This document shows positions 8,388 to 51,420 of a DNA stretch of 64,000 bases, piece by piece (position 1 is the first letter of the stretch; each line of letters starts with the position of its first letter). Location: the NCBI GenBank assembly GCA_965644295.1, contig CBFFRP010000149.1, forward strand, positions 62,001 to 126,000. Reading direction: 5' to 3'. The notes beneath the pieces are model-generated. The model was not told the DNA's origin and did not search any database. It saw nothing but the letters and a program-made list of their open reading frames with translations. The stretch comes from Paraphysomonas bandaiensis (lineage: Eukaryota; Protista; Chrysophyceae). The position numbers and the translations under genes are program-made.

Positions 8388-8880
8388 TCGTGAATTGCTG
8401 ATTATTAGCAACCGGCGTGTAAGGGTCAGAACTAATATAGCATTTCAATAATATAACTAACTAGTGTTTATACCTCTGATATCCTACTATATTCAACGCT
8501 ACGAAAGCACCAAGGTGCAACTACTTTCGCTCTATCACTCAAAGCAAACGCAGTGGGGAAGCAGAATGTTGATATACCTGATATCTGCTGACTTCAGGAT
8601 TTTTGAGTTCTTGAGGTAAATATCCCGGATGCTTGACTTCAACAGGCAGCCCAAAACCCCGACTGTCGTTGAGGTGGGCCCGTTCCCGGATGCCTGTTTA
8701 TTCGTCAAGTCCCAAGGACGTCTACAGATGTGAGGCTTATTTGTGTCTTTTGTATCACACCAGCATTTGGCTATGAGTGGGCATAGCAATATCTGCTGAC
8801 ACTATATATAAGCGGTTCACGATAGTGTCCCGGAGAAATATATATCAGGTACTTAACCACTGAACACCACGAAAAAGTGC
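8388..8880 (-). mobile_element. SINE-like dispersed repeat, copy 1
   Basis: Reverse complement of the unit at 32085-32549 and 38370-38746: GCATCCGGG sub-repeats, GCACCTTGGTGC core, 3' end ACGCC...TTGCTAATAATCAG. Confidence 0.65.
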
Positions 8881-8989
8881 AAGGCCGTCTTTGTTGAGAG
8901 ACTTGCACTAATCGGAGTGCGTATTTTCGTTGTAATTTATATTTCCGTGTGTGTAGAATCTTATATATATATATATATATATTATATAT

Positions 8990-10800
8990 TGAATGTCTGA
9001 TTATTTAGCAATAGGCGTTGAAAGCCTGCACCAATTAGTGGCTAGAAGAATGCTAGTCATACTAGTTAGACTACTACCCGTAACTAATCAATACAAACTC
9101 TTTTATCCTACTATTTAACGCTACAGAAGCTGCTTGTGCGTCGCCGCAAGCACCAAGGTGCAACCACTTCCGTTCTTAGTGTGTGTTATGAGGCTCGCCA
9201 TGATCGTGTGTCCTGGGACTCACCGGCGCGTGTGATCTGGAGGTCTCCTCTTGGGATGAGACTCCACTCGCTATATGATAGATAGCCTTATGTACCTCAC
9301 GGGGACTGACTTATTAGCCTTATGGCAGTTAGGGGAAACAGTAATATGCCCTTCTGAGATTGGCGATCTGGTGGCCTTCCTTTAGGCATTGTTCCAAGTG
9401 GCTCGGAGGTATGTGGATGAAGGTCTTGCAAAAGGTTATGGCCTACTGTGAAGAAGCGACGAAATCGGCTCTTTTGCTGTCTTAGCCAGCGGTAGAGAAC
9501 ACATGCAAGAGGGTGTATAGCTGTACAGGGGTGGGATGTGAGGGTCATCCGGTGTGTCCAGCTACAGGGAGTCGAGAGGGAGTGTGATGGTGCAAGAGAG
9601 GCAACATCTGATTGAGGGGAGTGAGACTGCGCAACAGAACAAGAGTCACTGAGGTCGAGTACTCTGATAGCCCTATGCACGAGATGATCGTGATGATGAT
9701 GATGGTCTGGAGGAGACACTCGGACGTCCTCAGCTGCCCTTGTTAGTGTCTGTGTTGGTGCAGGGGGGTACAGGCTGAGGCATAGAGTATGTGTGTAAGG
9801 AAGATGACGGCAAGGTATCAGAGACGAAGGGAGGGGAGATAGTTTGTCCGGGGGTTTTCTAGGAGGAGGTAGAGTGTACTGTGTGTGTGTATGACACTGC
9901 AGTGGTGTTATGAGTGTGTTGGACAGAGAGAGAGAGCTGGTGATGTGTCCAGCAGTACAGGTAGACAGGTACAAGTACATGGTGATGTGTCCAACAGTAC
10001 AGGTAGACAGGTACATGGACATGGTGATGTGTCCAGCAGTACAAGTAGACAGGTACATGGACATGGTGATGTGTCCAACAGTACAGGTATACAGGTACAT
10101 GGACATGGTGATGTGTCCAACAGTACAGGTATACAGGTACATGGACATGGTGATGTGTCCAACAGCAGTAGAGGTATACACGGAATGGTATACATCCTGT
10201 AGGACACAGTAGTACAGTAGTCGAGTATACCGTATGCGGAATACAGTGTCTATCCAATGAGATGGATGGGCTGTGGGGGTGATAGGTGAACAGGGTGAGG
10301 GGGTAGCCTGCTGGGTGGATGGACCACAGACAAACCATGTTGGGTTGGGTTGAGTGGGCGGCAGAAGGCAGCCCTGTTGCACAGTTGAGAGGGATCGAGA
10401 GTATTCAGTGATTGCATAGGGGGTCCATGGGGGTCGTTTTCGTGAGCCTGCTCGCACGAGCCATGTTCTGAGAGGTTGTAGCCGTAGAAAGCGATGGGTG
10501 AGACGAAGTTGTCTGCTGAGGGGATAGCACATAGGTGCGGTCAGCGCTGCATTGGTGCAGGCACGTGGTTTAACTGAAGTAGTTGAGTAGGGTGAAGGTT
10601 GCAAGGCCAGGCAGGGGGGCTTGGAGCGTGTACAACATGGTGTGACAGGTAATTTGTCGGAAGCGTGGTGGTCAACAAAATGCAGCAGTAAGGGAGTGTA
10701 AAAGGCCCTGGGCACACTGATGTGACTCAGCCACGGTCTCAATAGAGACATTGGGCTTGGAGCTGGTTAATAGGGTGAAACTTTATGTTGGACTGTATTT
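8990..10800 (-). mobile_element. Degenerate 3' part of a non-LTR (LINE-like) retrotransposon interrupted by a minisatellite
   Basis: C-rich minus strand encoding ...MPKGRPPD (~9385-9363), then the shared tail core GTGGTTGCACCTTGGTGCTTGCGGCGACGCACAAGCAGC, terminus CGCCTATTGCTAAATAATCAGACATTCA and a (TA)n run at 8962-8989. The 5' boundary is approximate. Confidence 0.55.
9939..10180. repeat. 42-bp minisatellite, about 5.7 copies
   Basis: Unit GGTGATGTGTCCARCAGTACAGGTAKACAGGTACATGGACAT starts at 9939, 9981, 10023, 10065, 10107 and 10149. Confidence 0.95.
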
Positions 10801-10917
10801 GCCATCGTAGGGCAGAGAATTTTTTTGTGTAGAATCTTGGTAGAGTATATATTTTAATTATGCGGCTTTTAAGTAAACAATAAAAAGTTAATATTGTTCT
10901 ATATTGCAAAAAATATG

Positions 10918-11309
10918 GTCACAGAAGATATTGTTCTGCCCGTTCACTGATAAGTGTCGCTTGTGTACTTAGTGTACTTAGACGTCCTTGGGCCTTGACG
11001 AATAAAAACAGGCATCCGGGAATGGCCCCACCTGAAGGGCATCCGGGATATTGGGCTGCTTGCTGAATTCAAATATCTGGAAATGGGCCCACCTCAAAGG
11101 CATCCGGGGTCAAGCATCCGGGCTCTTCACCTTAATGACAAAAAGAGTAAAAATGGTTGTACCTTGGTACTTGCGGTGACGTACAAGCAGCTTTCGTAGC
11201 GCGCCAAATAGTAGGATATCAGAGTTAAGCACTAGTTAGTTAAAAAATATTTTTACGGCATTTGTTCTGACTCTTACACACCTATTGCTAATACTCAGAC
11301 ATTTACTAT
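10918..11309 (+). mobile_element. SINE-like dispersed repeat, copy 2
   Basis: AGATATTGTTCTGCCC...GGCATCCGGG repeats...ACCTTGGTACTTGCGGTGACGTACAAGCAGC...CCTATTGCTAATACTCAGACATTTACTA. Confidence 0.65.
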
Positions 11310-17852: not shown

Positions 17853-18310
17853 GTTAGCAATAGGGGTCAATGGTCAATAATCAGCACCAGGTAAGTAGCT
17901 AGATGAAAACTAGTCAAGCTAAATAGATTTTTACCTGTAACTAACTAGTGCAAATTTTCATATCCTACTATGTAACGCTACGAAAGCTGTTTGTGCGTCG
18001 CCGCAAGCACCAAGGTGCGACTACTTCCGTTTTGTATGTGAGGGAGAAGCTCTCTATAGATGAGTCCTTGAAGTGCAGATGGGGTTATTCAAGGGGGCGT
18101 CCATTAGGGTAGGGGTCTGCAGGACTTTGTGGAGGCACAGGTGTCTGAATTAGTGAGTCGAGTGTTCCCAACCTGAGAGACGTGGGCGACGGGGTAGATT
18201 GGGATTCCGATGTGTCTTGAGATGGCGTGGGGCGCGAGTTGGGTCTAGGGAGAAGGAATAGCAGACGGAGGCGGTGTCGTGGCATCTCCGCTGGTGCCAT
18301 GTGTGGGGTA
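17853..18310 (-). mobile_element. 5'-truncated LINE-like 3' fragment
   Basis: ORF remnant ending PYPNGRPLE*, followed by the shared tail core (reverse complement at ~17985-18025). The 3' UTR matches 51220-51420. Confidence 0.6.
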
Positions 18311-18750: not shown

Positions 18751-21700
18751 CTAGACTCTGTTCGTTGCCTCCAATGAGTGTATTACAGTCACCAGCTGCT
18801 CTGATGAGACAGGCTTATGTATTACAGTACTTGCGCCATGTTCCAGAAAATAAGCTGTATCTGCTTTTAATACATTTCCAGTCAATCCAATTATTGGTAT
18901 AGTATATCCTTTTTCACGTAATATTTTAGCTGCTGTTGGTCCATTCATTCTAGGCATCTGGCCATCAACATGGGTTAATTTAAGCAAACATCATATAACA
19001 CAAAAATTACCTCGTAATCCATTACAATCGCATCAATAGTATCTGGGTTCTCGATAACTTTACTAATGCATTCTTCCCCATCAACTGCTTCCAGGCAAGT
19101 GTAGTTTGCTTGTCGCAACAACCGGCACACCACTTTGCGGCACATCGCAGAGTCATCAACCACAATTACATTTCTGGGAGAAAATGAAGTGTCCAATGCA
19201 CACTCAGAACGATAAGACTCTAACATCAACTTCGGAGTGGGTGGGATTGACACGCATTCTGTTCCCTGTATAGCCATTGTAACAGGTGTTGTAGGAGAAT
19301 CCCTTGGGAAAAACACTGGTAACTCGACAACAAACGAAGTGCCACACCCCTCTCCAGCAGAGCTACACGATATGGTGCCATGATGATGCTCAACAATGCT
19401 TTTAGCAATCCAAAGCCCAAGCCCAGAGCCTTGACCGGCCTGTGTACACATAATAAACACCTATCGATGCAGTAACAATGCATTGCCACACTATTATACC
19501 TGTAGTTTATTGGTTTTAAACTGCCAGCCTTCCTTGAATACATTGTCTATATTTTCTTGAGATAGTCCAACACCGGAATCTCTCACCGTTATTACAACTG
19601 AACCTTCCGCGATATGTGTACCTTGGTACTGGGACGCTACTTCGTTGACATGAGGGAGTCCATCGCGATTCCATTTCACTGAAATATATATATATGAGAC
19701 CGTATTTACAATAACGAAGTTTCATAGAAGTCTGGTTGCGCCATTAAAAATCAACAAAACCATATAGTACCTGAAACATCCACAGAACCGCCTGCTTTGG
19801 TAAACTTTAGAGCGTTAGATATTAGATTGCGAATAACTTGTCGAAGTTTACTGTCATCACCATGTATACATAGTGCCATCATTCTCGTGCTGGGTGATAC
19901 GCTTTGTAAACTCGAGCTATCATGGGCCGAGAATGATTTAGCAGAAGCACTCAAGTCACTTTCTTTACGCAATGCTTCTCTTACGGCATTATTTAACTCC
20001 TCCGACATACGGCTGTGCCTCCTAATTTCACAGTCCTTCTCGTCAGACGTTTCTGTATCGAAAGTTAAGGTTACTCCGGCCTCCACAGCTTGAATCTCAA
20101 ATAATCTTGTTGTAGTGAGCATTAGTTCCATCACATTCAGAATCTCCAAGTTCATATCAATATTACCAAACTTAATTCGATCGTATTGAAGTAAGTCATT
20201 GAGGATCAATACCGCAGCATCAGTACTGCCACCAATGTTTTCCAATAGAGCAGAAAAATCATCCAATTTCTCACGGGACACTTGAATTGGTCTATCTACA
20301 TTTGCTACGGTTCGTCGATCATCAACAGCAGTAACATTGGCTGGAAGAAGAGATTGTATCTCGCGAGCTACTAATTTAATGCCTAAACTGACTGTAGTGA
20401 GGGGAGTTCTCATTTCTGCATAGAGTATGTATCAGAGAAATTCAACATATAATATGTATTGGTACAAGGACTTACCGTGACTAATATAACGAACAAAATT
20501 CCTCTTGGCCTCATCATTCTCGAGGGTGCGCTTCGTGACTACCACGTCGTACCCCACAAACTGCACCATGCATGCTATTATCACAGCTACTGTTATCGCA
20601 GAAGTATAAATTGGACCATTCCCGTGGAACACTTTCGAGTAGGTTTCATCTCGGTATATGGTAACGGTGTATGTAAAGTCAATATTGTCGAAGAAAGAAA
20701 CAGGAAACTTCACTCTGTCTTCTTTATATTGCTTCTCTATTTTGCACCCAGATTCAATGTATACAGCTCTTCCATCTACAAATGTAAAGCAGTATTCACT
20801 CCTCTCATCATTCAAAACAACATGCAGACCCTCAGTGGATTCGAACACAGATTTGGTTAGCATTTCATCCCAATTAAACAGAGCAGATACAGAGCCCACA
20901 TGAATATATTCCTGGCCACCTAAGGTAATAATAATACTTGAAGAAGCTACATCCGGTTCTAAATCACTGAAATTTGTGATCGGTAACATCACAGGGTGAT
21001 GTATAAAACTTGCGGGACGAAATTCCACATCTTCCACGAGGTGAATTACTCGAGAGATACCCATGCATTCTTGAGCTATTACTGACATCTCTGTGCCTTC
21101 CATACTACCATCATACCTACGAATACATTCGAATATCGGATCAATAGCGTCAATGCGGTCCTGATCGGAGTATATATTAAACAGGAGAGCTCCTCTATTG
21201 ACTGTCGGATTCTTGATCTGAACGATTGGCAGAATTAAATCATTCTCCCCATAAGAATAGGGTTCAGTCACTGTGTACACTTTATTCGTAGACTCGTTTA
21301 CAGCAAATATGCCTTGTTGACGAATGCTCTCAGCAAGGTCCGGAAACCCTGAGGCGGAGTAAAAGTCACTGGTATACTTGATAAATGACGGAATCTGTCG
21401 GGGATGTATTTTCACTTCGTGATTGCATCCACGTATATCTGCCATTGTTATCAACGAGTTCACAAATCTATCATACACCTCAATATCGACAGTGCAATTC
21501 GGCCACGATGCTGTGGTTGGACAACTTGTCTTCAACAAAGACTCCATGCTATTCAACGCTGATTGCTTGGTTGCAAAGCCCTCTTTACAGTACCGCTTCA
21601 TGTGGTCGGTCAAGGACTTGAAGGACAACTTCTCAACTTTGTCTTCATCTGCTCTCATGAGTGTGTATGAGAAATACCCTCCAATCGCAGCGGTGGCAAA

Positions 21701-21796
21701 CAAACAGCACATCAGTGTCAACCTCAATAGATTTAAGCTGTGGTCGAAATTGGCTTTGCCTCCTAGAGGCCCCAAAGGAGTTACTTTCAATGACAT
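18751..21796 (-). CDS. Hybrid sensor histidine kinase (TM - CHASE-like sensor - TM - HisKA - HATPase - REC), copy A, 5 exons
   Basis: H-box FVRYISH|EMRTPL across intron 1, N-box NLISNALKFT, G1 VRDSGVGL, G2 GSGLGLWIAKSIVEHHHG, receiver VVDDS...MDYE|MPRMNG...HKPV. Confidence 0.92.
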
Positions 21797-22239: not shown

Positions 22240-22375
22240 CATGAATTTTTCGTCATTTCAAATGATTTTCCAAGACAATGGACACAATGCGGTGTGGTGT
22301 GTACCATCATGGCGTAAATAATACAGTCGAGTCCTATTCAGTATTTCGGTTTGCCTGCTTGATCTGCATGTTGAT
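22240..22375. repeat. Left copy of the 136-bp direct duplication flanking the Copia element (putative long TSD)
   Basis: CATGAATTTTTCG...CTGCATGTTGAT is identical to 27474-27609 and abuts the 5' LTR exactly. Confidence 0.9.
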
Positions 22376-22731
22376 CGTAGAGCTAAATGATGATTCGGTA
22401 TAGAAGTCTTCGAGTGATGGAAATGAAAGTCAACGTGCACATTCGTTTTTGTTACAGTGATTATGTTTTCAGTCATTGTACATGTGTGACTCTGTAGGAT
22501 ACGAGTGAGAGTGTACAGTAGAACATGATCAGCTGTAGTATTATTGTGTTGTAGGGAGACACCATAATTTCCTATCACTAACGATTTCTGTAGTATTTGC
22601 AAAGAGACTTGTCTTTTGCCTACCTGTAGTGTAGTTTGAACGGAGGACAACGGGCGAACTGGATCCGTGAGTGTTTGATTGATCTGTAGTATCAGTGTTG
22701 TATTTTCGATCCAAGTACGTATTTCTCTTCG
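22376..22731 (+). repeat. 5' LTR (356 bp, CGTAGAG...CTCTTCG)
   Basis: Identical by eye to 27118-27473. Boundaries are fixed by divergence of flanking bases: gat|CG vs gtg|CG, and CG|tga vs CG|cat. Confidence 0.95.
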
Positions 22732-22746
22732 TGATAGGAAATTATG
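22731..22746 (+). promoter_or_regulatory. Putative self-priming primer-binding site
   Basis: GTGATAGGAAATTATG is the exact reverse complement of CATAATTTCCTATCAC at 22563-22578 inside the LTR (27305-27320 in the 3' LTR). It does not begin with the TGG expected for a tRNA 3'-CCA primer. Confidence 0.8.
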
Positions 22747-25700
22747 AAGAAGTCGAGCAACGAGAAGCTCAAGAAGTTTAGGAACAAGGCGTTGGACCAG
22801 CGGTCCAGGGGCCAAGGGGCAGAGGCATTGACCCCAACGGTGCCGATTCTGAAGTATGGGACGAACACCAACCTGGCGGTATTTAAGCAGAAGCTCACAG
22901 TGGCCGCCATGATGCTATTTGGTGACCTAGCGAGGCTCGTGGAGACCGATGAGTATTATGAACCACCCAAGATAAAGATTGAGGACTACGATCTCGATAA
23001 TGACCCCCACGGTCTGAACCTGGAAGAACTTAAGGATGCGAGAAAGACACGCCAAAGGAAGATTGACCAAATGCGTGACAACCGATCAGCTTTCTATGCG
23101 TTCATGTATGACAGACTGAGCAACGAGTCCGTGGACGCGATTAAGCAATTGGAGGAATACGAAGAGATTAACTCCTCCAAGGACCCTCTACTGTTGTGGC
23201 TTGCCATCAAGCAGACTCACAAAACAGCGACGAACTCCAATGTAGGGACCATCATGCGTGCAGAAACGAGAAAGAAGTACCAAGACGTGCGTCAGGGTCC
23301 ATTTGAGAGTATCGTGGCCTATAAGGAGCGTTTCGATTTTCTTTTGGAAGCGTACAATGATATGGAGAATCCGAAGATGGAAGAAGAAGATATAGCTATG
23401 GACTTCTTCAGGGGTCTGGACGACACCAGATATGAGGAGTTTAAGACCAGTTTTATGAATGACTTAATGATGGGGACACAGAAGCCACCCAAGCACGTGA
23501 ACGAGATCTACACTAAAGCTTCGAAGTATATCACCCCGAAGAGAGGAGCGAAACCAAATGGTGGTGTTGCGTTTGTGAGCAGGAAGGACACCTCGACTAA
23601 ACAACAGCGTCGCACAGGTGATGCTGATGACAAGACGAAGTCGAATGGGACCGACGAGTCGAAAGGAAGCGTGCGAAAGCATAGAGGCCCTATTGTATGT
23701 TGGGGTTGTGGAAAGACTGGACACAAGCTAAACCAGTGTCAAGAGAACGTCGAACCAGAGGAGAAACAATGCTCAGTGACTATGCAGAATGCGTTCACAT
23801 CGGGAGGAGAGCGTTTCGAATGGTACGAAGTTCTACTAGACAATCAGGCGGATGTGTCCGTTGTGCACCCGTGGCTACTGACAGATGTGAGACCTGCCGA
23901 TCGTAAGTGTAAAGTAGCTGGCTTGTCTGGTCACGCAGTAGAACTGCCCAATGTGGGAGAGCTGCCACAATTTTTCACATGTAAAACTGCCGACAACCTA
24001 CGAGTCAGTGTGTTGTGCCAAGCTGATGTCGAAGATCTGTACCCTATTGTGTATGAGCCAGGAGTGTCATACACGGTGTGTCTACCTAATAGAGAGCTAG
24101 TGTTCTACAGACGGAACAAAATGTATATAGCTGATATGAGGGATTGGGTGACACAAGGCAGGGTAAATATTACGACAACAAGAATGAAAGAACAAGAATA
24201 CACTAAAAGCGAAGTGGTGAGAGCTCGGAGGGCGCTGGAACTTGTACGGAACGCGGGTTTCGACTCAGAGCAGGGAGCCATGAACCTTGTGAGCGACGGA
24301 AATGTAACAGACGTGCCGTTGACGGCGCAAGACGTGAGGCGAGCTTTCGACATATACGGGAAGCCTTATGAAGCGGTTAGGGGGAAGACCACTAAACGTA
24401 AGAGCGGTAGGCAGTACGTGGACGTGGGAATCAAAGCAGATCAGCCCAAGCCGCAACGTTTGTATACCGATATATTCAGTGTGAGAAAACAACCGTTCCT
24501 GATAACACTGTCCGAGCCACTGGGGTTGACTCTTGTATCTCCGGTAGCTAGTGAGAAGACTGATGATCTAGGTCTAGCTTTTCAGGAGCAAGTATCTCTA
24601 CTAAGAAGTCATGGTTTCGCACCAACTGTAGCCTATCTGGATCCGCAGCCTGGTTTCCAACCCCTCAGAGGACAGATTACAGGGGTGGAAGTAGATGTGT
24701 GTGGAGCAGGGGATCACATGGACAAGGTAGATCTCAAGATCCGGAGACTGAAAGAGACTATTAGATCTGTGCAGGCAGGATTACCCTGGTCACTGCCTGA
24801 TAACATGGTCAGAGATCTGGTGAAGTACTCAAACAGTCGCCTAAATATCAGAAGGCCGTCTACAGGCACATCCATAGTAGCGCCACGAGTAGCGTTCACT
24901 GGGAGAAAGCCTAACTACCGAAAGGAACTAGAGCTAGCATTTGGTGACTACGTGGAGTGCTACAACCCAAAGGTGCGAAGCAACGATGCCGAGCAAAGTC
25001 ACACTGAGCCGTGTATTGCATTGTACCCTACTGGAAATGCCAACGGTAGCTGGTTTTTTATGAATGCGAAGACACACAAGCGAGTGAGAAGGACACACTG
25101 GGTGAAAATGAAGACAACACAGCTCATAATTGATGCGATGAATCAGATGGCGAAGATGGGTGATACGACTAGGAAGAGTCAGATTCCGAACCCACTCCTA
25201 CAGTCGATAGAAGCAGAAGAGCAGCAGAAAGGCGAAGACATGAAGGAGAGTACGCCAGAGGACGTTAAACAGACTCCAGTTGCAGAAACAATAGTGGAAG
25301 ATGTATCTACTACTGTGGTTGATGTAGAGCATAGTGGAGACCCACTAGGAGATGACGGTGATAATGAAGGTGAAGTGCCAGAACTTGTTGATGAGGAGCT
25401 GGATGACGATGTCCCAACTATGAAGTCCGGCAGCAGCATTACAAGCAGTGACGAGACAGGCGTTGAGAACGACAGGTCGCCGGATGCGAAGTCGAAACCA
25501 GTAGAGTACAGGGCCTTTCACACGAGTGCGATGAAGGGACTGCGTGAGTATGGTCCACCGGCATATAACGCTATCATATCGGAACTGAAACAACTTTTGC
25601 ATGACAAGAAGGCTATGCGTCCAGTACACCGCAAGGACTTATCGGCAACACAGTTGAAGAGAGCTATTCGATCTCTGATGTTTCTCAAGACTAAGTATGA

Positions 25701-27132
25701 TGGCTTAGGGCGCTTCGAAAAGATAAAAGCAAGACTGGTAGCTAATGGCGCACAACAAGATAGGAAGGTGTACGTAGACACATCGTCACCAACAGCAGCG
25801 ATGCAATCGATTATGATGTGTCTGGCGATAGCTGCTAAAGAGGGACGTCACATAGGTACCATGGATATAGGAGGCGCTTACCTGAACGCCGAGATGTCTG
25901 GCGAAGAAGTCATAATGGAATTAGAGCCAATGTTAACGACGATATTGAAGAAAGTGGCTCCTGAAGTATCACCGTATGTTGATGAGACTGGTAAACTACT
26001 AGTGCGGCTGGACAAGGCGCTATACGGGTGCATCCAGAGTGCGAAACTCTGGTACAACACGCTTACAGGATATTTGAGAAGTTTGGGATTCGAGCACAAC
26101 GCGGTCGACCCATGTGTAATGAACAAAGTAGCTGGCGGGCGAAAGTGTACAGTGGTGATATTCGTGGATGACATACTGGTCATGTCAAGCCATAAGGGCG
26201 ACTACCTAGAGTTGCTTAAGAAACTGAAAGAGAAGTTTGGGGATGTAAAGCACGACGATGGGAAAGATCTGTCATATCTCGGAATGCACATTAGAGCAGA
26301 GGGAGATAAGGTGACAGTGTCCATGAGATCGTACATCGAGAATTTTCTACGAGAACACGGAGTGACAGGAACTGCTACATCACCTGCTACAGCTACTCTA
26401 TTTAAGAACACCATGGACAAACCCACTAGTAAGAGTGATAGAAGGAAGTTTCACAAGATGGTGGCTCAGTTGCTGTACCTGGCCAAAAGGGTTAGACCAG
26501 ACATACTGCTTGCAGTCGCTTACCTTAGCACGAGAGTCAAGAATCCGACGCATGCTGACATGGAGAAACTTGGCAGGGTGACCCGCTACCTGAACGCGAC
26601 TAAGGGGCAGGACTTGTTGCTGTGCATTGGAAAGAATCTTACCGTTACTGGATACGTCGATGCGGCATTTGGGACTCATGACGATGGAAAGGGTCATTCG
26701 GGTCTGGTCGTAAAGGTGGGGGATGCAACAGTACTCTGCAAATCGTCGAAACAGCGCATTGTGACACGTGACTCGACGGAATCAGAGTTGGTAGGTCTAT
26801 CAGATATGTTAATGATGATTGTGCAATGTGCAGAATTCATAAAGGAACAAGGATACAGTATTGACGCACCTAGAGTGTTGCAAGACAATACCTCGACTCT
26901 ATCTCTTGTAACGAAAGGCGGAGGCAAATATCGTACAAAATACCTGCGTGTGAGGCGTGAATTCATCAAGGAAAGGGCAGATGAAGGAAGCATTCAATTG
27001 GAGTACTTACCCACAAAGATGATGTTGGCTGATGCATTGACGAAGCCCCTCCAAGGTACTCTGTACAAGTTTATGACATGTGGTATCGTGGGAAACAATA
27101 CACATGCCACAGGGGTGCGTAGAGCTAAATGA
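22744..27132 (+). CDS. Copia gag-pol polyprotein (1462 aa)
   Basis: Zn knuckle CWGCGKTGHKLNQC; protease VLLDNQADVSV; integrase LYTDIF / YLDPQ / HMDKVDLKIRRLKE; RT KARLVANG, MDIGGAYLNA, KALYGCIQSAKLWY, IFVDDIL; RNase H YVDAAF, STESELV, QDNTS, ADALTKPL. No stops or frameshifts. Confidence 0.97.
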   Translation: MKKSSNEKLKKFRNKALDQRSRGQGAEALTPTVPILKYGTNTNLAVFKQKLTVAAMMLFGDLARLVETDEYYEPPKIKIEDYDLDNDPHGLNLEELKDARKTRQRKIDQMRDNRSAFYAFMYDRLSNESVDAIKQLEEYEEINSSKDPLLLWLAIKQTHKTATNSNVGTIMRAETRKKYQDVRQGPFESIVAYKERFDFLLEAYNDMENPKMEEEDIAMDFFRGLDDTRYEEFKTSFMNDLMMGTQKPPKHVNEIYTKASKYITPKRGAKPNGGVAFVSRKDTSTKQQRRTGDADDKTKSNGTDESKGSVRKHRGPIVCWGCGKTGHKLNQCQENVEPEEKQCSVTMQNAFTSGGERFEWYEVLLDNQADVSVVHPWLLTDVRPADRKCKVAGLSGHAVELPNVGELPQFFTCKTADNLRVSVLCQADVEDLYPIVYEPGVSYTVCLPNRELVFYRRNKMYIADMRDWVTQGRVNITTTRMKEQEYTKSEVVRARRALELVRNAGFDSEQGAMNLVSDGNVTDVPLTAQDVRRAFDIYGKPYEAVRGKTTKRKSGRQYVDVGIKADQPKPQRLYTDIFSVRKQPFLITLSEPLGLTLVSPVASEKTDDLGLAFQEQVSLLRSHGFAPTVAYLDPQPGFQPLRGQITGVEVDVCGAGDHMDKVDLKIRRLKETIRSVQAGLPWSLPDNMVRDLVKYSNSRLNIRRPSTGTSIVAPRVAFTGRKPNYRKELELAFGDYVECYNPKVRSNDAEQSHTEPCIALYPTGNANGSWFFMNAKTHKRVRRTHWVKMKTTQLIIDAMNQMAKMGDTTRKSQIPNPLLQSIEAEEQQKGEDMKESTPEDVKQTPVAETIVEDVSTTVVDVEHSGDPLGDDGDNEGEVPELVDEELDDDVPTMKSGSSITSSDETGVENDRSPDAKSKPVEYRAFHTSAMKGLREYGPPAYNAIISELKQLLHDKKAMRPVHRKDLSATQLKRAIRSLMFLKTKYDGLGRFEKIKARLVANGAQQDRKVYVDTSSPTAAMQSIMMCLAIAAKEGRHIGTMDIGGAYLNAEMSGEEVIMELEPMLTTILKKVAPEVSPYVDETGKLLVRLDKALYGCIQSAKLWYNTLTGYLRSLGFEHNAVDPCVMNKVAGGRKCTVVIFVDDILVMSSHKGDYLELLKKLKEKFGDVKHDDGKDLSYLGMHIRAEGDKVTVSMRSYIENFLREHGVTGTATSPATATLFKNTMDKPTSKSDRRKFHKMVAQLLYLAKRVRPDILLAVAYLSTRVKNPTHADMEKLGRVTRYLNATKGQDLLLCIGKNLTVTGYVDAAFGTHDDGKGHSGLVVKVGDATVLCKSSKQRIVTRDSTESELVGLSDMLMMIVQCAEFIKEQGYSIDAPRVLQDNTSTLSLVTKGGGKYRTKYLRVRREFIKERADEGSIQLEYLPTKMMLADALTKPLQGTLYKFMTCGIVGNNTHATGVRRAK

Positions 27133-27473
27133 TGATTCGGTATAGAAGTCTTCGAGTGATGGAAATGAAAGTCAACGTGCACATTCGTTTTTGTTACAGT
27201 GATTATGTTTTCAGTCATTGTACATGTGTGACTCTGTAGGATACGAGTGAGAGTGTACAGTAGAACATGATCAGCTGTAGTATTATTGTGTTGTAGGGAG
27301 ACACCATAATTTCCTATCACTAACGATTTCTGTAGTATTTGCAAAGAGACTTGTCTTTTGCCTACCTGTAGTGTAGTTTGAACGGAGGACAACGGGCGAA
27401 CTGGATCCGTGAGTGTTTGATTGATCTGTAGTATCAGTGTTGTATTTTCGATCCAAGTACGTATTTCTCTTCG
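27118..27473 (+). repeat. 3' LTR, preceded by a short purine-rich tract AGGGGTG (27111-27117)
   Basis: Identical to the 5' LTR; the polyprotein stop codon (27130-27132) lies inside it. Confidence 0.95.
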
Positions 27474-27609
27474 CATGAATTTTTCGTCATTTCAAATGAT
27501 TTTCCAAGACAATGGACACAATGCGGTGTGGTGTGTACCATCATGGCGTAAATAATACAGTCGAGTCCTATTCAGTATTTCGGTTTGCCTGCTTGATCTG
27601 CATGTTGAT
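27474..27609. repeat. Right copy of the 136-bp direct duplication (putative long TSD)
   Basis: Identical to 22240-22375 and abuts the 3' LTR exactly. Confidence 0.9.
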
Positions 27610-27943: not shown

Positions 27944-30900
27944 ATGACGAAAGTAACTCCTTTGGGGCCTCTGGGAGGCAAAGCCAATTTCGACCACAGC
28001 TTAAATCTATTGAGGTTGACACTGATGTGCTGTTTGTTTGCCACCGCTGCGGTTGGAGGGTATTTCTCATACACACTCATGAGAGCAGATGAAGACAAAG
28101 TTGAGAAGTTGTCCTTCAAGTCCTTGACCGACCATATGAAACGGTATTGCAAAGAGGGCTTTGCAGAGAAGCTATCAGCGTTGAATAGCATACAGTCTTT
28201 GTTGAAGACAAGTTGTCCAACCACAGCATCGTGGCCGAATTGCACTGTCGATATTGAGGAGTATGATAGATTTGTGAACTCGTTGATAACAATGGCAGAT
28301 ATACGTGGATGCAATCACGAAGTGAAAATACATCCCCGACAGATTCCGTCATTTATCAAGTATACCAGTGACTTTTACTCCGCCTCAGGGTTTCCGGACC
28401 TTGCTGAGAGCATTCGTCAACAAGGCATATTTGCTGTAAACCAGTCTACGAATAAAGTGTACACAGTGACTGAACCCTATTCTTATGGGGAGAATGATTT
28501 AATTCTGCCAATCGTTCAGATCAACAATCCGTCAGTCAATAGAGGAGCTCTCCTGTTTAATATATACTCCGATCAGGACCGCATTGACGCTATTGATCCG
28601 ATATTCGAATGTATTCGTAGGTATGATGGTAGTATGGAAGGCACAGAGATGTCAGTAATAGCCCAAGAATGCACGGGTATGTCTCGAGTAATTCACCTCG
28701 TGGAAGATGTGGAATTTCGTCCCGCTATTTTTTTACTTCACCCTGTGATGTTACCAATCACAAATTTCAGTGATTTAGAACCTGATGTAGCTTCTTCAAG
28801 TATTATTATTACCTTAGGTGACCAGGAATATATTCATGTGGGCTCTATAACTGCTCTGTTTAATTGGGATGAAATGCTAACCAAATCTGTGTTCGAATCC
28901 ACTGAGGGTCTGCATGTTGTTTTGAATGATGAGAGGAATGAATACTGCTTTACATTTGTAGATGGAAGAGCTGTATACGCTGAATCTGGGTGCAAAATAG
29001 AGAAGCAATATAAAGAAGACAGAGTGAAGTTTCCTGTTTCTTTCCTCGACAATATTGACTTTACATACACCGTTACCATATACCGAGATGAAACCTACTC
29101 GAAAGTGTTCCACGGGAATGGTCCAATTTATACTTCTGCGATAACAGTAGCTGTGATAATAGCATGCATGGTGCAGTTTGTGGGGTACGACGTGGTAGTC
29201 ACGAAGCGCACCCTCGAGAATGATGAGGCCAAGAGGAATTTTGTTCGTTATATTAGTCACGGTAAGTCCTTGTACCAATACATATTATATGTTGAATTTC
29301 TCTGATACATACTCTATGCAGAAATGAGAACTCCCCTCACTACAGTCAGTTTAGGCATTAAATTAGTAGCTCGCGAGATACAATCTCTTCTTCCAGGCAA
29401 TGCTACAGCTATTGATGATCGACGAACCGTAGCAAATGTGGATAGACCAATTCAAGTGTCCCGTGATAAATTGGATGATTTTTCTGCTCTATTGGAAAAC
29501 ATTGGTGGCAGTACTGATGCTGCGGTATTGATCCTCAATGACTTACTTCAATACGATCGAATTAAGTTTGGCAATATTGATATGAACTTCGAGATTCTGA
29601 ATGTGATGGAACTAATGCTCACTACAACAAGATTATTTGAGATTCAAGCTGTGGAGGCCGGAGTATCCTTAACTTTCGATACAGAAACGTCTGACGAGAA
29701 GGACTGTGAAATTAGGAGGCACAGCAATATGTCGGAAGAGTTAAATAATGCCGTAAGAGAAGCAATGCGTAAAGAAAGTGACTTGAGTGCTTCTGCTAAA
29801 TCATTCTCGGCCCATGATAGCTCGAGTTTACAAAGCGTATCACCCAGCACGAGAATGATGGCACTATGTATACATGGTGATGACAGTAAACTTCGACAAG
29901 TTATTCGCAATCTAATATCTAACGCTCTAAAGTTTACCAAAGCAGGCGGTTTTGTGGATGTTTCAGGTACTATATGGTTTTGTTGATTTTTAATGGCGCA
30001 ACCAGACTTCTATGAAACTTCGTTATTGTAAATACGGTCTCATATATATATATATTTCAGTGAAATGGAATCGCGATGGACTCCCTCATGTCAACGAAGT
30101 AGTGTCCCAGTACCAAGGTACACATATCGCGGAAGGTTCAGTTGTAATAACGGTGAGAGATTCCGGTGTTGGACTATCTCAAGAAAATATAGACAATGTA
30201 TTCAAGGAAGGCTGGCAGTTTAAAACCAATAAACTACAGGTATAATAGTGTGGCAATGCATTGTTACTGCATCGATAGGTGTTTATTATGTGTACACAGG
30301 CCGGTCAAGGCTCTGGGCTAGGGCTTTGGATTGCTAAAAGCATTGTTGAGCATCATCATGGCACCATATCGTGTAGCTCTGCTGGAGAGGGGTGTGGCAC
30401 TTCGTTTGTTGTCGAGTTACCAGTGTTTGTTCCTGTTGTTTCTTCTACTCCTTCTACTAAAAAGTTAGAATACTTTCCTTTTACCGCACCTAATCGTTCT
30501 GAACGGTGTCTGCAATCTACATCGCCACTTTTGAAAACAGTTCTTGTGGTTGATGACTCCGCTATGTGCCGCAAAGTGGTCTGTCGACTGTTGCAAGGAG
30601 TTGGTGTTACATGCCTGGAAGCAGTTGATGGGGAAGAATGCATTAGTAAAGTTATCGAGAACTCAGATACTATTGATGCGATCGTAATGGATTACGAGGT
30701 AATTTTTATGTTATATGATGTTTGTTTAAGTTAACCTATGTGTTGATGGCCAGATGCCTAGAATGAATGGACCAACAGCAGCTAAAATATTACGTGAAAA
30801 AGGATATACTATACCAATAATTGGATTGACTGGAAATGTATTAAAAGCAGATACAGCTTATTTTTTGGAACATGGCGCAAGTGCAGTTATGCATAAGCCT

Positions 30901-31598: not shown

Positions 31599-31966
31599 TA
31601 GTGAATGTCTTATTATCAGCAATAGGCGTGTAAAAGTCAGAACTAATGTAGCAAAACAAGGAAACTAAAACTAGTACCTAACTTTGATATCCTACTATTT
31701 TTTTATCACTACGAAAGCTGCTTGTGCGTCACCGCAAGCACCAAGGTGAAACCACTTTCGCTCTATCATTCAAAGCATAGTGAGCAAGCAGAATGTTGAT
31801 ATATACCTGACATCTGCTAACTTCAGGACTTTAGAGTCTTTAAGGTAAACAGCCCGGATGCTTGACTTCAACAGAGGCAACCCAATACCCCGGATGCCTG
31901 TTTATTCGTTTATTCGTCAAGGCTCAAAGACGTTTACACAAGCAATTGGTTATGAGTGGGCAGAAC
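31599..31966 (-). mobile_element. SINE-like dispersed repeat, copy 3
   Basis: TAGTGAATGTCTTATTATCAGCAATAGGCGTGTAAAAGTCAGAAC...GCTGCTTGTGCGTCACCGCAAGCACCAAGGTG...CCCGGATGC; inverted relative to copy 4. Confidence 0.65.
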
Positions 31967-32084
31967 GTACACGTAAACTTTAACCTGGCTTTGTTGCGAA
32001 AAATGTACTTTAAATAAGAATTGTAACTACGAATTACTCTGAACACGTTAGATGTAACACACTCGTCAAAGTCGGACTCGGACC

Positions 32085-32549
32085 TCTTCGTGGTGTTCTG
32101 GGGGATAAGTACTGTTCTCCAGCAAACTAACATAAGCCGCGTATATATAGTCAGCAGATATTGTTCTGCCCACTTATAGGAAAATGCTTGTGTAGCACAA
32201 GAGTCACTACTATAGGTGTCACTTGTGTAGATGTCTTTGGGCCTTGGCGAATAAACAGGCATTCGGGAATGGGCCCACCTCAAGGGCATCCGGGGTATTG
32301 GGCTGCCAGCTGAAGTCAAGCATCCGGGCTGGTTCACCTTAAAGTCTCTAAAGTCCTGAAGTTAGCAGATATCACATACTGCTAGCTCACTGCATTTGCT
32401 TTGAGTGATAGTGTTTGCACCTTGGTGCTTCAGGTGACGCAGAAGCAGCTTTCGTAGCATTAGATAGTAGGATATCAGAGTTAAGCATTGAATAGTTAAA
32501 TTAGTTCTGACTCTTACACGCCTATTAGAAATAATAAGGCATTTACTAC
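32085..32549 (+). mobile_element. SINE-like dispersed repeat, copy 4
   Basis: Same unit on the plus strand, ending ACACGCCTATTAGAAATAATAAGGCATTTACTA. Confidence 0.65.
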
Positions 32550-35560: not shown

Positions 35561-35766
35561 ATTGAGATGTTAATACCACCAGCTCAATATATTAGAGTGG
35601 GGAAATGGATCAAAGCATGAGCCATATTCAACTGATCAGTTCATACATATAGCTACTGCTGTATGCGTATGTGTGTCAGTTAATCAGTTTAATCAGTGCC
35701 AGAAAATGTATATAATTTATTATGATATTATATATAACAAATTAAGAGCTCTGAAATAAGTCGATA

Positions 35767-35838
35767 TCCCGATTAGTCCAGTGGTTAGGATATAGCCCTC
35801 TCAAGGCTGAGACCCGGGTTCAATTCCCGGATCGGGAA
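35767..35838 (+). tRNA. tRNA-Glu (CTC)
   Basis: 72 nt; acceptor stem TCCCGAT/ATCGGGA; D arm TAGTCCAGTGGTTAGGATA; anticodon loop CT-CTC-AA; T arm CCGGGTTCAATTCCCGG; downstream T7 terminator. Confidence 0.96.
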
Positions 35839-36210
35839 ACCTTTTTTGATGTCGTTTTTGATAAAATCTAGATATTTTTTGCACCACCAAAAAATCATAT
35901 TTCACCCTGAAAAAATGCTTTATACTGATATGAATGATAGAATTAATCCATCTTTTCCACCGTTAAAAGTTGTTTTCATGAAATCCAGAGTCACCCTTTT
36001 GAAGTTTCTCTGGATTTCCCTATGACACACAACCCCTTGTATATAAAGGACAACTCGACATACGTACGAAGGATAAGTTTTAAGGTTCAAGATCAGAAAA
36101 AGGTAAAAACCGAGAAAAATGGCATCCCAACTGGAGATGTTCTTAACAAGTTAATTTAGTAGATTGTTCATTTATATATACCTTTTTTACCGACTTATCA
36201 TAAGTCCTCA

Positions 36211-36282
36211 TCCCGATTAGTCCAGTGGTTAGGATATGGCCCTTTCAAGGCTGAGACCCGGGTTCAATTCCCGGATCGGGAA
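36211..36282 (+). tRNA. tRNA-Glu (TTC)
   Basis: Same body as 35767-35838 with anticodon loop CT-TTC-AA; downstream T7 terminator. Confidence 0.96.
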
Positions 36283-36539
36283 AACTTTTTTTGTAAATTT
36301 ACTTCTGTTTTTTTTTGCTGTTGTGGAGTAACGTTGCGCCTATGTATACACAGCAGTATATGTATATGTATATTATGTATGGTGTTTTACGTACAGCAGA
36401 GTGTCTATGGAACAATATGTACATTACACAAGCTCATCTAACCAGCACAACATGTCACTAAGTTTTAATGTAATTTTCTAATTCTTCAAATGCACTAGTA
36501 ACAGGCCTTGATATTGTATATTAATCTGACGTGTGGGGT

Positions 36540-38369: not shown

Positions 38370-38746
38370 TAAATACTTCTCCGGGAAACTAAAGTTAGCC
38401 GCATATATCATAGTCAGCAGATAACGTTCTGCCCACTCATAGCCAAATGCTTTCGTAGCACAAGAGTCACTAATATAAGTGTCACTTGTGTACGTCTCTG
38501 GGCCTTGACGATTAAACAGGCATCCGGGAATTGGGCTGCCAGCTGAAGTCAAGCATCCGGGCTGTTCACCTTAAGGACAGAAAGCGAATGTGGTTTCACC
38601 TTGGTGCTTGCGGTGACGCACAAGAAGTAGCTTTTGTAGAGCAAAAAGTAGTAGGATATGAGAGTTAAGCACTAGTTAGTTAAATTGTGTTGCTACATTA
38701 GTTCTGACTCTTACACGCCTATTGCTAATAATCAGGCATTCACTAT
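38370..38746 (+). mobile_element. SINE-like dispersed repeat, copy 5
   Basis: TAGTCAGCAGATAACGTTCTGCCC...CACCTTGGTGCTTGCGGTGACGCACAAG...CGCCTATTGCTAATAATCAGGCATTCACTA. Confidence 0.65.
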
Positions 38747-39049
38747 TACATGTGATGTGGAATACAAAAGCGCTAGTCGCACAATATAATAGCTACTTCA
38801 TTTTCTGGGAACACAAATTCAAATATTGTTTATCCATTGCCATTTTGGAAACTGACGTGCCGTAAGACAAGTAGAGTAACTACTAAGTACACATTTAATA
38901 AACTTGCGAAAACATTCTAGTTGTTCATTTCCATTCTTATTAGTTGTATTTCGACTAGGCGATACAACATTACAGTACTATTAAATTTTAGTTTATTCAA
39001 AATATATGACAAGTTAAATTAAGACTGTATGACCTGCTTATACCGATTT

Positions 39050-48248: not shown

Positions 48249-48942
48249 GTATGTATGTATATGTATGTATGTATGTATGTATGGATGTATGTATGTATGT
48301 ATGTATGTATGTATGTATGTATGTATGTATGTATGTATGTATGTATGTATGTATGTATGTATGTATGTATGTATGTATGTATGTATGTATGTATGTATGT
48401 ATGTATGTATGTATGTATGTATGTATGTATGTATGTATGTATGTATGTATGTATGTATGTATGTATGTATGTATGTATGTATGTATGTATGTATGTATGT
48501 ATGTATGTATGTATGTATGTATGTATGTATGTATGTATGTATGTATGTATGTATGTATGTATGTATGTATGTATGTATGTATGTATGTATGTATGTATGT
48601 ATGTATGTATGTATGTATGTATGTATGTATGTATGTATGTATGTATGTATGTATGTATGTATGTATGTATGTATGTATGTATGTATGTATGTATGTATGT
48701 ATGTATGTATGTATGTATGTATGTATGTATGTATGTATGTATGTATGTATGTATGTATGTATGTATGTATGTATGTATGTATGTATGTATGTATGTATGT
48801 ATGTATGTATGTATGTATGTATGTATGTATGTATGTATGTATGTATGTATGTATGTATGTATGTATGTATGTATGTATGTATGTATGTATGTATGTATGT
48901 ATGTATGTATGTATGTATGTATGTATGTATGTATGTATGTAT
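48249..48942. repeat. (ATGT)n tetranucleotide microsatellite, about 690 bp
   Basis: Near-perfect ATGT array with about two interruptions at the left end. Confidence 0.99.
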
Positions 48943-51219: not shown

Positions 51220-51420
51220 CAGAGAGCCTCTCCCTTACACAAGAACGGAAGTGGTTGCACCTTGGTGCTTGCGGCGACGCACAAGCAGCTTCTGTAGCGT
51301 TAAATAGTAGGAAATTAGAATTTACACTAGTTAGTTACTGGTAGAGGTCGATCGAGCTTGACTAGTCTTCATCTAACTACTTATCTGGTTTCGATTCTTG
51401 ACTCCTACTGCTAATAATAA
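51220..51420 (+). mobile_element. LINE-like 3' UTR fragment
   Basis: AAGAACGGAAGTGGTTGCACCTTGGTGCTTGCGGCGACGCACAAGCAGCTTCTGTAGCGTTAAATAGTAGGA matches the reverse complement of 9106-9177. Confidence 0.7.

Follow-up and report, generated by a model that had tools for sequence, protein, structure and literature searches.

Self-priming of reverse transcription, in which the start of the element's own RNA serves as primer, has been demonstrated solely in fission-yeast Tf1 and is inferred elsewhere. In Tf1, the first 11 nt of the RNA pair with the primer-binding site (PBS) and RNase H cuts between nucleotides 11 and 12 (review PMC7175516). The same mode is predicted for the Tf1/sushi group, which includes Maggy, Skippy, Cft-1, sushi-ichi and Tcn1 (PMC6317226). 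For Copia elements the prediction comes from one plant survey, which extended it to the whole plant Ty1/copia TAR lineage (Neumann et al. 2019, PMC6317226) and which used as criterion a 5'-LTR complement of at least 10 bp to a stretch starting 0-5 bp after the LTR (PMC6317226). Self-priming had been proposed earlier for two plant Ty1/copia elements, Houba and Osr-1, according to the account of Capy 2005 given in that survey (PMC6317226). The Copia elements of the GalEa type carry a local palindromic hairpin, named the 'conserved hairpin site', for which their authors found no complement in the LTR (PMC5445492). Finally, the Copia-like CoDi elements of diatoms are about 5-8 kb long, generate short target-site duplications (TSDs; 4 bp for Blackbeard) and include some families devoid of TG/CA termini (Maumus et al. 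2009, PMC2806351); the paper describing them is silent on priming (PMC2806351). Our literature search returned no report of self-priming in a stramenopile or protist Copia element, and none linking Paraphysomonas with retrotransposons. A previous sequence-only reading of the locus presented here knew of no described Copia example of self-priming. The novelty that this implied is not supported, since Houba and Osr-1 had been proposed and the TAR lineage predicted to prime in this way (PMC6317226). The present finding is thus a further lineage of an already predicted Copia priming mode and not a new category, with comparative support that is stronger than usual.

The element lies in a 64-kb stretch of Paraphysomonas bandaiensis DNA, which was analyzed as a whole and is referred to as the window. 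It is intact, about 5.1 kb in size, and is composed of two LTRs and a single ORF; all its features, as well as the repeats that flank it, are given on the + strand. The 5' LTR (22376-22731) and the 3' LTR (27118-27473) are 356 nt long and 100% identical. Their termini, which form a 6/7 terminal inverted repeat, are CG...CG instead of the TG...CA that is usual, if not universal, in Ty1/copia elements, and the LTRs of the relatives start with CGT or CAT after a CCACAGGGG(TG) tract. In the window copy, a polypurine-type plus-strand primer tract, CCACAGGGGTG (27107-27117), is found inside the ORF and adjoins the 3' LTR, and the same CCACAGGGG(TG) motif is found immediately before the 3' LTR of four related loci (L084, L085, L086 and L093).

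The ORF (22744-27132) encodes a gag-PR-IN-RT-RH polyprotein of 1462 amino acids, its final 15 nt being located within the 3' LTR. A CCHC zinc knuckle with invariant C319, C322, H327 and C332 is present in the nucleocapsid part of Gag (amino acids 319-332, positions 23698-23739); it also matches HIV NC (E 7e-6), and zf-CCHC was detected in 29/31 relatives. An integrase catalytic core followed by an SH3-like C-terminal domain (amino acids 540-800, positions 24361-25143) is predicted on the basis of an AlphaFold model (AF2 pLDDT 86.6), which resembles retroviral integrases in Foldseek (E 1e-9, probability 1.0). The Pfam rve profile gave no integrase match in the window ORF or in any of the 31 relatives scanned, sequence profiles from the PDB likewise missed this domain, and no HHCC zinc finger was apparent by eye upstream of amino acids 540-800 in the alignment consensus. 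Downstream, a Copia-type reverse transcriptase (amino acids 973-1212, positions 25660-26379) was recognized by PF07727 RVT_2 (E 1.7e-30), and residues D1306, E1346 and D1381, kept across the alignment, form what we take to be the D/E/D pattern of RNase H-like domains.

By its RVT_2 reverse transcriptase and its gag-PR-IN-RT-RH order, the element is a Ty1/copia retrotransposon (Pseudoviridae). The Copia assignment made in the sequence-only reading is therefore confirmed, both by RVT_2 and by the integrase fold upstream of the reverse transcriptase. We did not observe the Gypsy-type arrangement, with a Gypsy-type reverse transcriptase and an integrase downstream of RT-RNase H, as the integrase at amino acids 540-800 precedes the reverse transcriptase at 973-1212. 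This order excludes membership of the Gypsy-type Tf1/sushi group. Together with the Copia-type reverse transcriptase, it also makes the priming trait described below independent of that group, in line with what had been claimed.

The window copy is a recent and intact insertion. Several indicators of activity were collected, namely the identical LTRs, the intact ORF, ORF differences biased towards synonymous changes and a peptide from a Paraphysomonas transcriptome. This peptide (transcriptome MMETSP1103, taxon Paraphysomonas, a chrysophyte stramenopile) falls, together with the ORF, into one protein cluster at 90% identity. Another family copy, L001, is 99.3% identical and was inserted elsewhere. 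Comparison of the two ORFs (window 22744-27132, L001 138-4526) revealed 28 nucleotide differences, 22 of which are synonymous, indicating that the copies diverged under selection for function, i.e. as actively replicating lineages. In two further loci of the same family, L089 and L090, the 5' LTR (positions 1200-1436, equivalent to 22497-22630 of the window) is devoid of about 134 nt between two CTGTAG repeats, of which the LTR has five, and this deletion takes out the primer segment. An intron was considered for this gap and rejected, the boundaries being unable to provide GT...AG and the gap being bordered by CTGTAG direct repeats. Head-to-tail arrays made of the internal region and one LTR were seen in a Tara scaffold (L083) and in GCA_040384245.1 (L094), with periods of 4742 and 4662 nt, respectively; they may be genuine tandem elements with shared LTRs, or else loops produced by the assembler.

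The insertion is bordered by a perfect direct repeat of 136 bp of host DNA, one copy of which (22240-22375) abuts the 5' LTR and the other, identical one (27474-27609) the 3' LTR. This repeat behaves like an oversized TSD, about 30 times the length of the 4-5 bp duplications of relatives, as found for L084 and L093. The short (4-6 bp) TSD of Ty1/copia elements is absent from the window copy; given the duplications of its relatives, the family appears typical and the window copy aberrant. The hypothesis that the 136 bp belong to a longer LTR was discarded, as the order is flank-LTR-internal-LTR-flank and the flank of L001 is unrelated. The repeat could possibly result from the joining of LTR ends 136 nt apart, from a crossover between two insertions 136 bp apart, or from an assembly artefact at a heterozygous insertion.

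With regard to its surroundings, the retrotransposon was inserted in the 6.2-kb spacer that separates the 5' ends of two head-to-head gene copies (454 and 453 amino acids, 96% amino-acid identity, weak match to a CHASE domain). These are held by a 2.8-kb inverted duplication (19002-21788 and 27949-30707, 97-98% complementary). The gene called on the left flank was on the strand opposite to the element in 5/6 resolved insertions, including those of the window, L084, L085, L089 and L093. Elements of this kind may favour gene 5' ends or divergent promoters, as far as a small sample and gene calls that are not eukaryote-aware can tell. The genes of the window are ordinary eukaryotic ones (DENN/PH, WD40, lectin, Arf-like GTPase). 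The window also contains a distinct family of dispersed repeats, of the foldback or long-TIR type, whose inverted arms are long and imperfect (8471-11227 and 31599-32548, with fragments at 17894-18040, 38410-38747 and 51250-51322); the 484-aa ORF enclosed by one of its copies had no Pfam match. A (GTAT)x174 microsatellite (48249-48942, 99% pure) makes spurious long ORFs on both strands.

The 5' LTR of the element contains a segment, 22563-22578, that is the exact reverse complement (16/16 nt) of positions 22731-22746. The latter, our predicted primer-binding site, reads GTGATAGGAAATTATG and is made of the last LTR base, the entire 12-nt leader and the gag ATG through its G. The former is the putative self-primer, taken as the first bases of the element RNA. 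The main observations of the sequence-only reading were thus reproduced: the perfect 16-nt complementarity, the location of the segment 188 nt into the LTR (it begins at base 188 of the identity-defined LTR), the gap of 12 nt between the 5' LTR and the gag ATG (22732-22743, with the ATG at 22744) and a pairing edge at the last LTR base, the 5' LTR ending at 22731. When up to 2 mismatches were allowed, the 16-mer was found at three places in the 64 kb, i.e. the binding site, the LTR segment and the second copy of this segment in the 3' LTR (27305-27320). Shuffled sequence is expected to give 0.07 matches, and no shuffle gave 3. Applied to the window, the published operational criterion (at least 10 nt, 0-5 nt after the LTR) yields 16/16 paired nucleotides from the last LTR base.

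To compare related elements, loci were gathered by a protein search, one metagenome scan (80 loci) and individual contig look-ups, and each locus whose ORF was intact was examined for complementarity between the stretch following the 5' LTR and the LTR. In 30 distinct elements, which share 27-64% protein identity with the window element, the same two places are perfectly complementary over 10-17 nt. One partner is found directly after U5 and the other inside the LTR, 62-186 nt upstream. The paired sequences are unrelated and unalignable between families and have A+T-richness as their only common trait, as exemplified by the binding-site side of L003 (GTAAAACTATATTA), L042 (CACAGATTGATTAAT) and L058 (ACTTGATATAGATTGT). 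The co-variation of the PBS and the LTR segment among related Copia families, which had been put forward as a check of self-priming, was therefore observed, the 30 elements remaining complementary with unrelated sequences. As a control, coding windows of the same loci were matched against the same targets; the longest match averaged 6.9 nt and never exceeded 12, the 99.9th percentile being 11.6. The signature recurs in independent assemblies from ENA, Tara, JGI and NCBI.

In a tree based on RT-RNase H, the 30 positive elements, which share ancestry and do not represent 30 independent trials, fall together to one side of a branch whose SH-aLRT support is 100%. Four signature-less elements (L071, L079, L080 and L081) are on the other side of this branch and form the outgroup; the 'LTR' of L079 is a whole-element tandem repeat, in which the priming site is unreadable. 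Where both LTRs were resolved (window, L005, L006, L084, L086 and L093), the site starts at -1 to +5 nt from the LTR end, in agreement with the operational criterion applied to plant elements, with 4 nt separating the identity-defined LTR end from the site in L086. The signature is present in L022 and L084, with a site relatively far from the ATG. The 3' LTR of L085 stops 5 nt past the primer segment, which we read as a truncation rather than as the true LTR end of the element, and no LTR sequence is included in locus L060.

These comparisons also bear on tRNA priming. A tRNA or half-tRNA site, for example one for the initiator-tRNA anticodon loop as in copia, Ty5 and Osser, was evaluated and rejected, and we regard it as very improbable. 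The self-primer segment begins with CATAA, to be compared with CAUAA, which we take to be the anticodon-loop sequence of the initiator tRNA. Half-tRNA priming is moreover common among Copia lineages (PMC6317226). However, this match spans 5 nt, comes from the gag ATG and is absent where the site stops short of the ATG. Whereas tRNA sites are conserved, no motif of tRNA type was common to the binding sites across the families of the 30 relatives. The two tRNA-Glu genes of the window, which were the only host tRNAs checked, match the site over just 4 nt. In view of the absence of a shared tRNA-like motif and of this 4-nt match, the 12 nt following the LTR do not appear to be a PBS of the tRNA type, in agreement with the earlier reading. 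The Rfam search of the window identified two tRNAs and nothing else. The two genes, tRNA-Glu(CTC) (35756-35847) and tRNA-Glu(TTC) (36200-36291), lie 444 bp apart and both sit in a 92-nt repeat that is 93% identical including flanks.

The 5' edge of the pairing on the LTR side was found to be a CA dinucleotide in 20/24 families (background 0.14, binomial P 6e-14), usually in the context T/C-C-A; in the window, this CA corresponds to 22563-22564. CA is the core of the Pol II initiator element, and by analogy the edge CA could represent an initiator. An abrupt stop of pairing at this dinucleotide is expected if no RNA exists upstream to pair, and we infer a putative transcription start near 22563. 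The ends of contigs were also considered as a proxy for the transcription start and discarded, most contigs being LTR-collapsed loops with their first 55-127 nt repeated at the end. The CA-edge statistic, together with the shuffle expectation of 0.07, the coding-window control and the recurrence in independent assemblies, refutes the explanation of the complementarity by chance or artefact, to which we give practically no credit.

When the RNA spanning 22563-22750 was folded (-52 kcal/mol, z -2.6), its 5' end and the binding site formed a 16-bp helix closing the minimum-energy structure, and the corresponding helix was present in the minimum-energy structure of 22/22 families tested. The same complementarity would be seen if the primer derived from the LTR but acted in trans, a short RNA released from a different family transcript then annealing to the site. 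Complementarity cannot tell cis from trans, and several near-identical copies exist. This alternative appears improbable to us in view of the fold, since a duplex that closes a stable local structure in all 22 families, over a distance that is short and varies rather little (62-186 nt), favours intramolecular pairing, as described for Tf1 (PMC7175516).

The helix includes the gag AUG in the window element, L002, L092 and L056. This makes a translational role plausible and leads to the main rival explanation, according to which the conserved leader structure formed by the helix has a different function (sequestering of the start codon, packaging or dimerisation) and a host RNA or some other mechanism primes. 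A conserved hairpin that replaces the PBS, with a role that is unknown, has indeed been described in the fungal GalEa Copia elements (PMC5445492). Nevertheless, in most families the helix stops short of the AUG. In the window it fills the 12-nt leader, leaving no room for another primer site, and the LTR end, whose position depends on where the minus strand starts, follows the 3' edge of the pairing. We thus consider it unlikely that the helix serves another job in place of priming, and the two roles are mutually compatible.

Close copies differ by matched changes. In the window copy, the site reads ...AGGAAA... and the segment ...TTTCCT..., while L001 and L083, which are 99.3% identical to it, both have ...AGAAAA... 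as site and ...TTTTCT... as segment. The same pair of matched changes separates L002 from L092, in a sister family. At a divergence of 0.66%, the chance of a complementary partner change is about 0.002. Judging from the way in which the PBS of tRNA-primed elements is inherited, plus-strand strong-stop DNA would copy the primer, so that the next cycle would transfer a change in the LTR segment to the binding site.

Taken together, the complement at the PBS position, its co-variation in 30 relatives and the lack of a conserved tRNA-like sequence support the Tf1-like self-priming proposed in the sequence-only reading, and we consider it likely, from the sequences at hand, that the members of this clade prime themselves in the manner of Tf1. 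In the model that we propose, transcription would start from the CA at 22563/22564. The first ~15-16 nt of the RNA would fold back over ~150 nt of R-U5 to pair with the stretch going from the last LTR base through the gag AUG. The RNase H of the element would then cleave the RNA where the paired segment ends on its 3' side, near 22577/22578, and the freed 3'-OH would be extended into U5, as a result of which the LTR would end exactly where the pairing begins. Finally, plus-strand strong-stop synthesis would copy the primer and rewrite the binding site of the daughter element. Through this rewriting, a single change in the LTR segment would become a matched, two-sided change within one cycle. 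Since the cap-proximal bases and the start codon are both contained in the helix, RNA in the folded state would probably be devoted to reverse transcription and open RNA to translation.

A broader scenario can be put forward more tentatively. In an old clade of protist Copia elements that is widespread in the environment, self-priming may have had an origin separate from those in Tf1/sushi and plant TAR, with the helix acting as a switch between translation and reverse transcription (through the AUG in some families) and with a site that is rewritten every cycle. Such rewriting would explain the matched two-sided changes among near-identical copies. As a whole, we view this scenario as conceivable, if somewhat doubtful.

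Our results suggest that tRNA-independent priming has evolved more than once and can persist for a long time. The clade represents an unusually clean comparative case, in which 30 divergent elements have perfect helices despite unrelated sequences, with matched changes between close copies and a CA edge. Such compact elements, with a leader of 12 nt and a primer helix that overlaps the start codon, are suited to testing the balance between translation and replication. On the practical side, LTR annotation pipelines that need a PBS of the tRNA type will miss or misclassify this clade, whose integrase also escapes Pfam rve.

Compared with Tf1 and Tf2 of Schizosaccharomyces pombe, the protist elements are alike in having, directly after the 5' LTR, a site that complements the start of their own RNA (here, the putative start), in the absence of a tRNA site, in a predicted R-U5 fold-back and in a primer presumably released by RNase H. 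They differ in several respects. Tf1 is a Ty3/gypsy chromovirus with the integrase after the reverse transcriptase, whereas the window element is a Ty1/copia element with the integrase before it. The duplex is 10-17 bp long in the protist clade versus 11 in Tf1, and that of the window includes the start codon. Tf1/Tf2 are the only self-primers shown experimentally, while the protist clade is known from sequence. Like the Tf1/sushi group, the protist clade displays self-complementarity at the PBS position as a trait common to the whole clade, but the members of the former are all Gypsy-type chromoviruses. The fungal GalEa elements are likewise Copia elements without a tRNA-type PBS and with a conserved structure at the PBS position; their hairpin is local, whereas the partner in the protist clade lies in the LTR, 62-186 nt upstream. 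The diatom CoDi elements, likened here by published description, share a stramenopile host, the Copia type, short TSDs and, in some families, ends other than TG/CA. The plant TAR lineage belongs to the same superfamily and carries the same in-silico signature. Its hosts are land plants, whereas the protist clade comes from a stramenopile protist and aquatic metagenomes. Beyond the evidence available for TAR, that for the protist clade comprises covariation across deep divergences, matched changes between copies that are nearly identical and a CA edge that is conserved.
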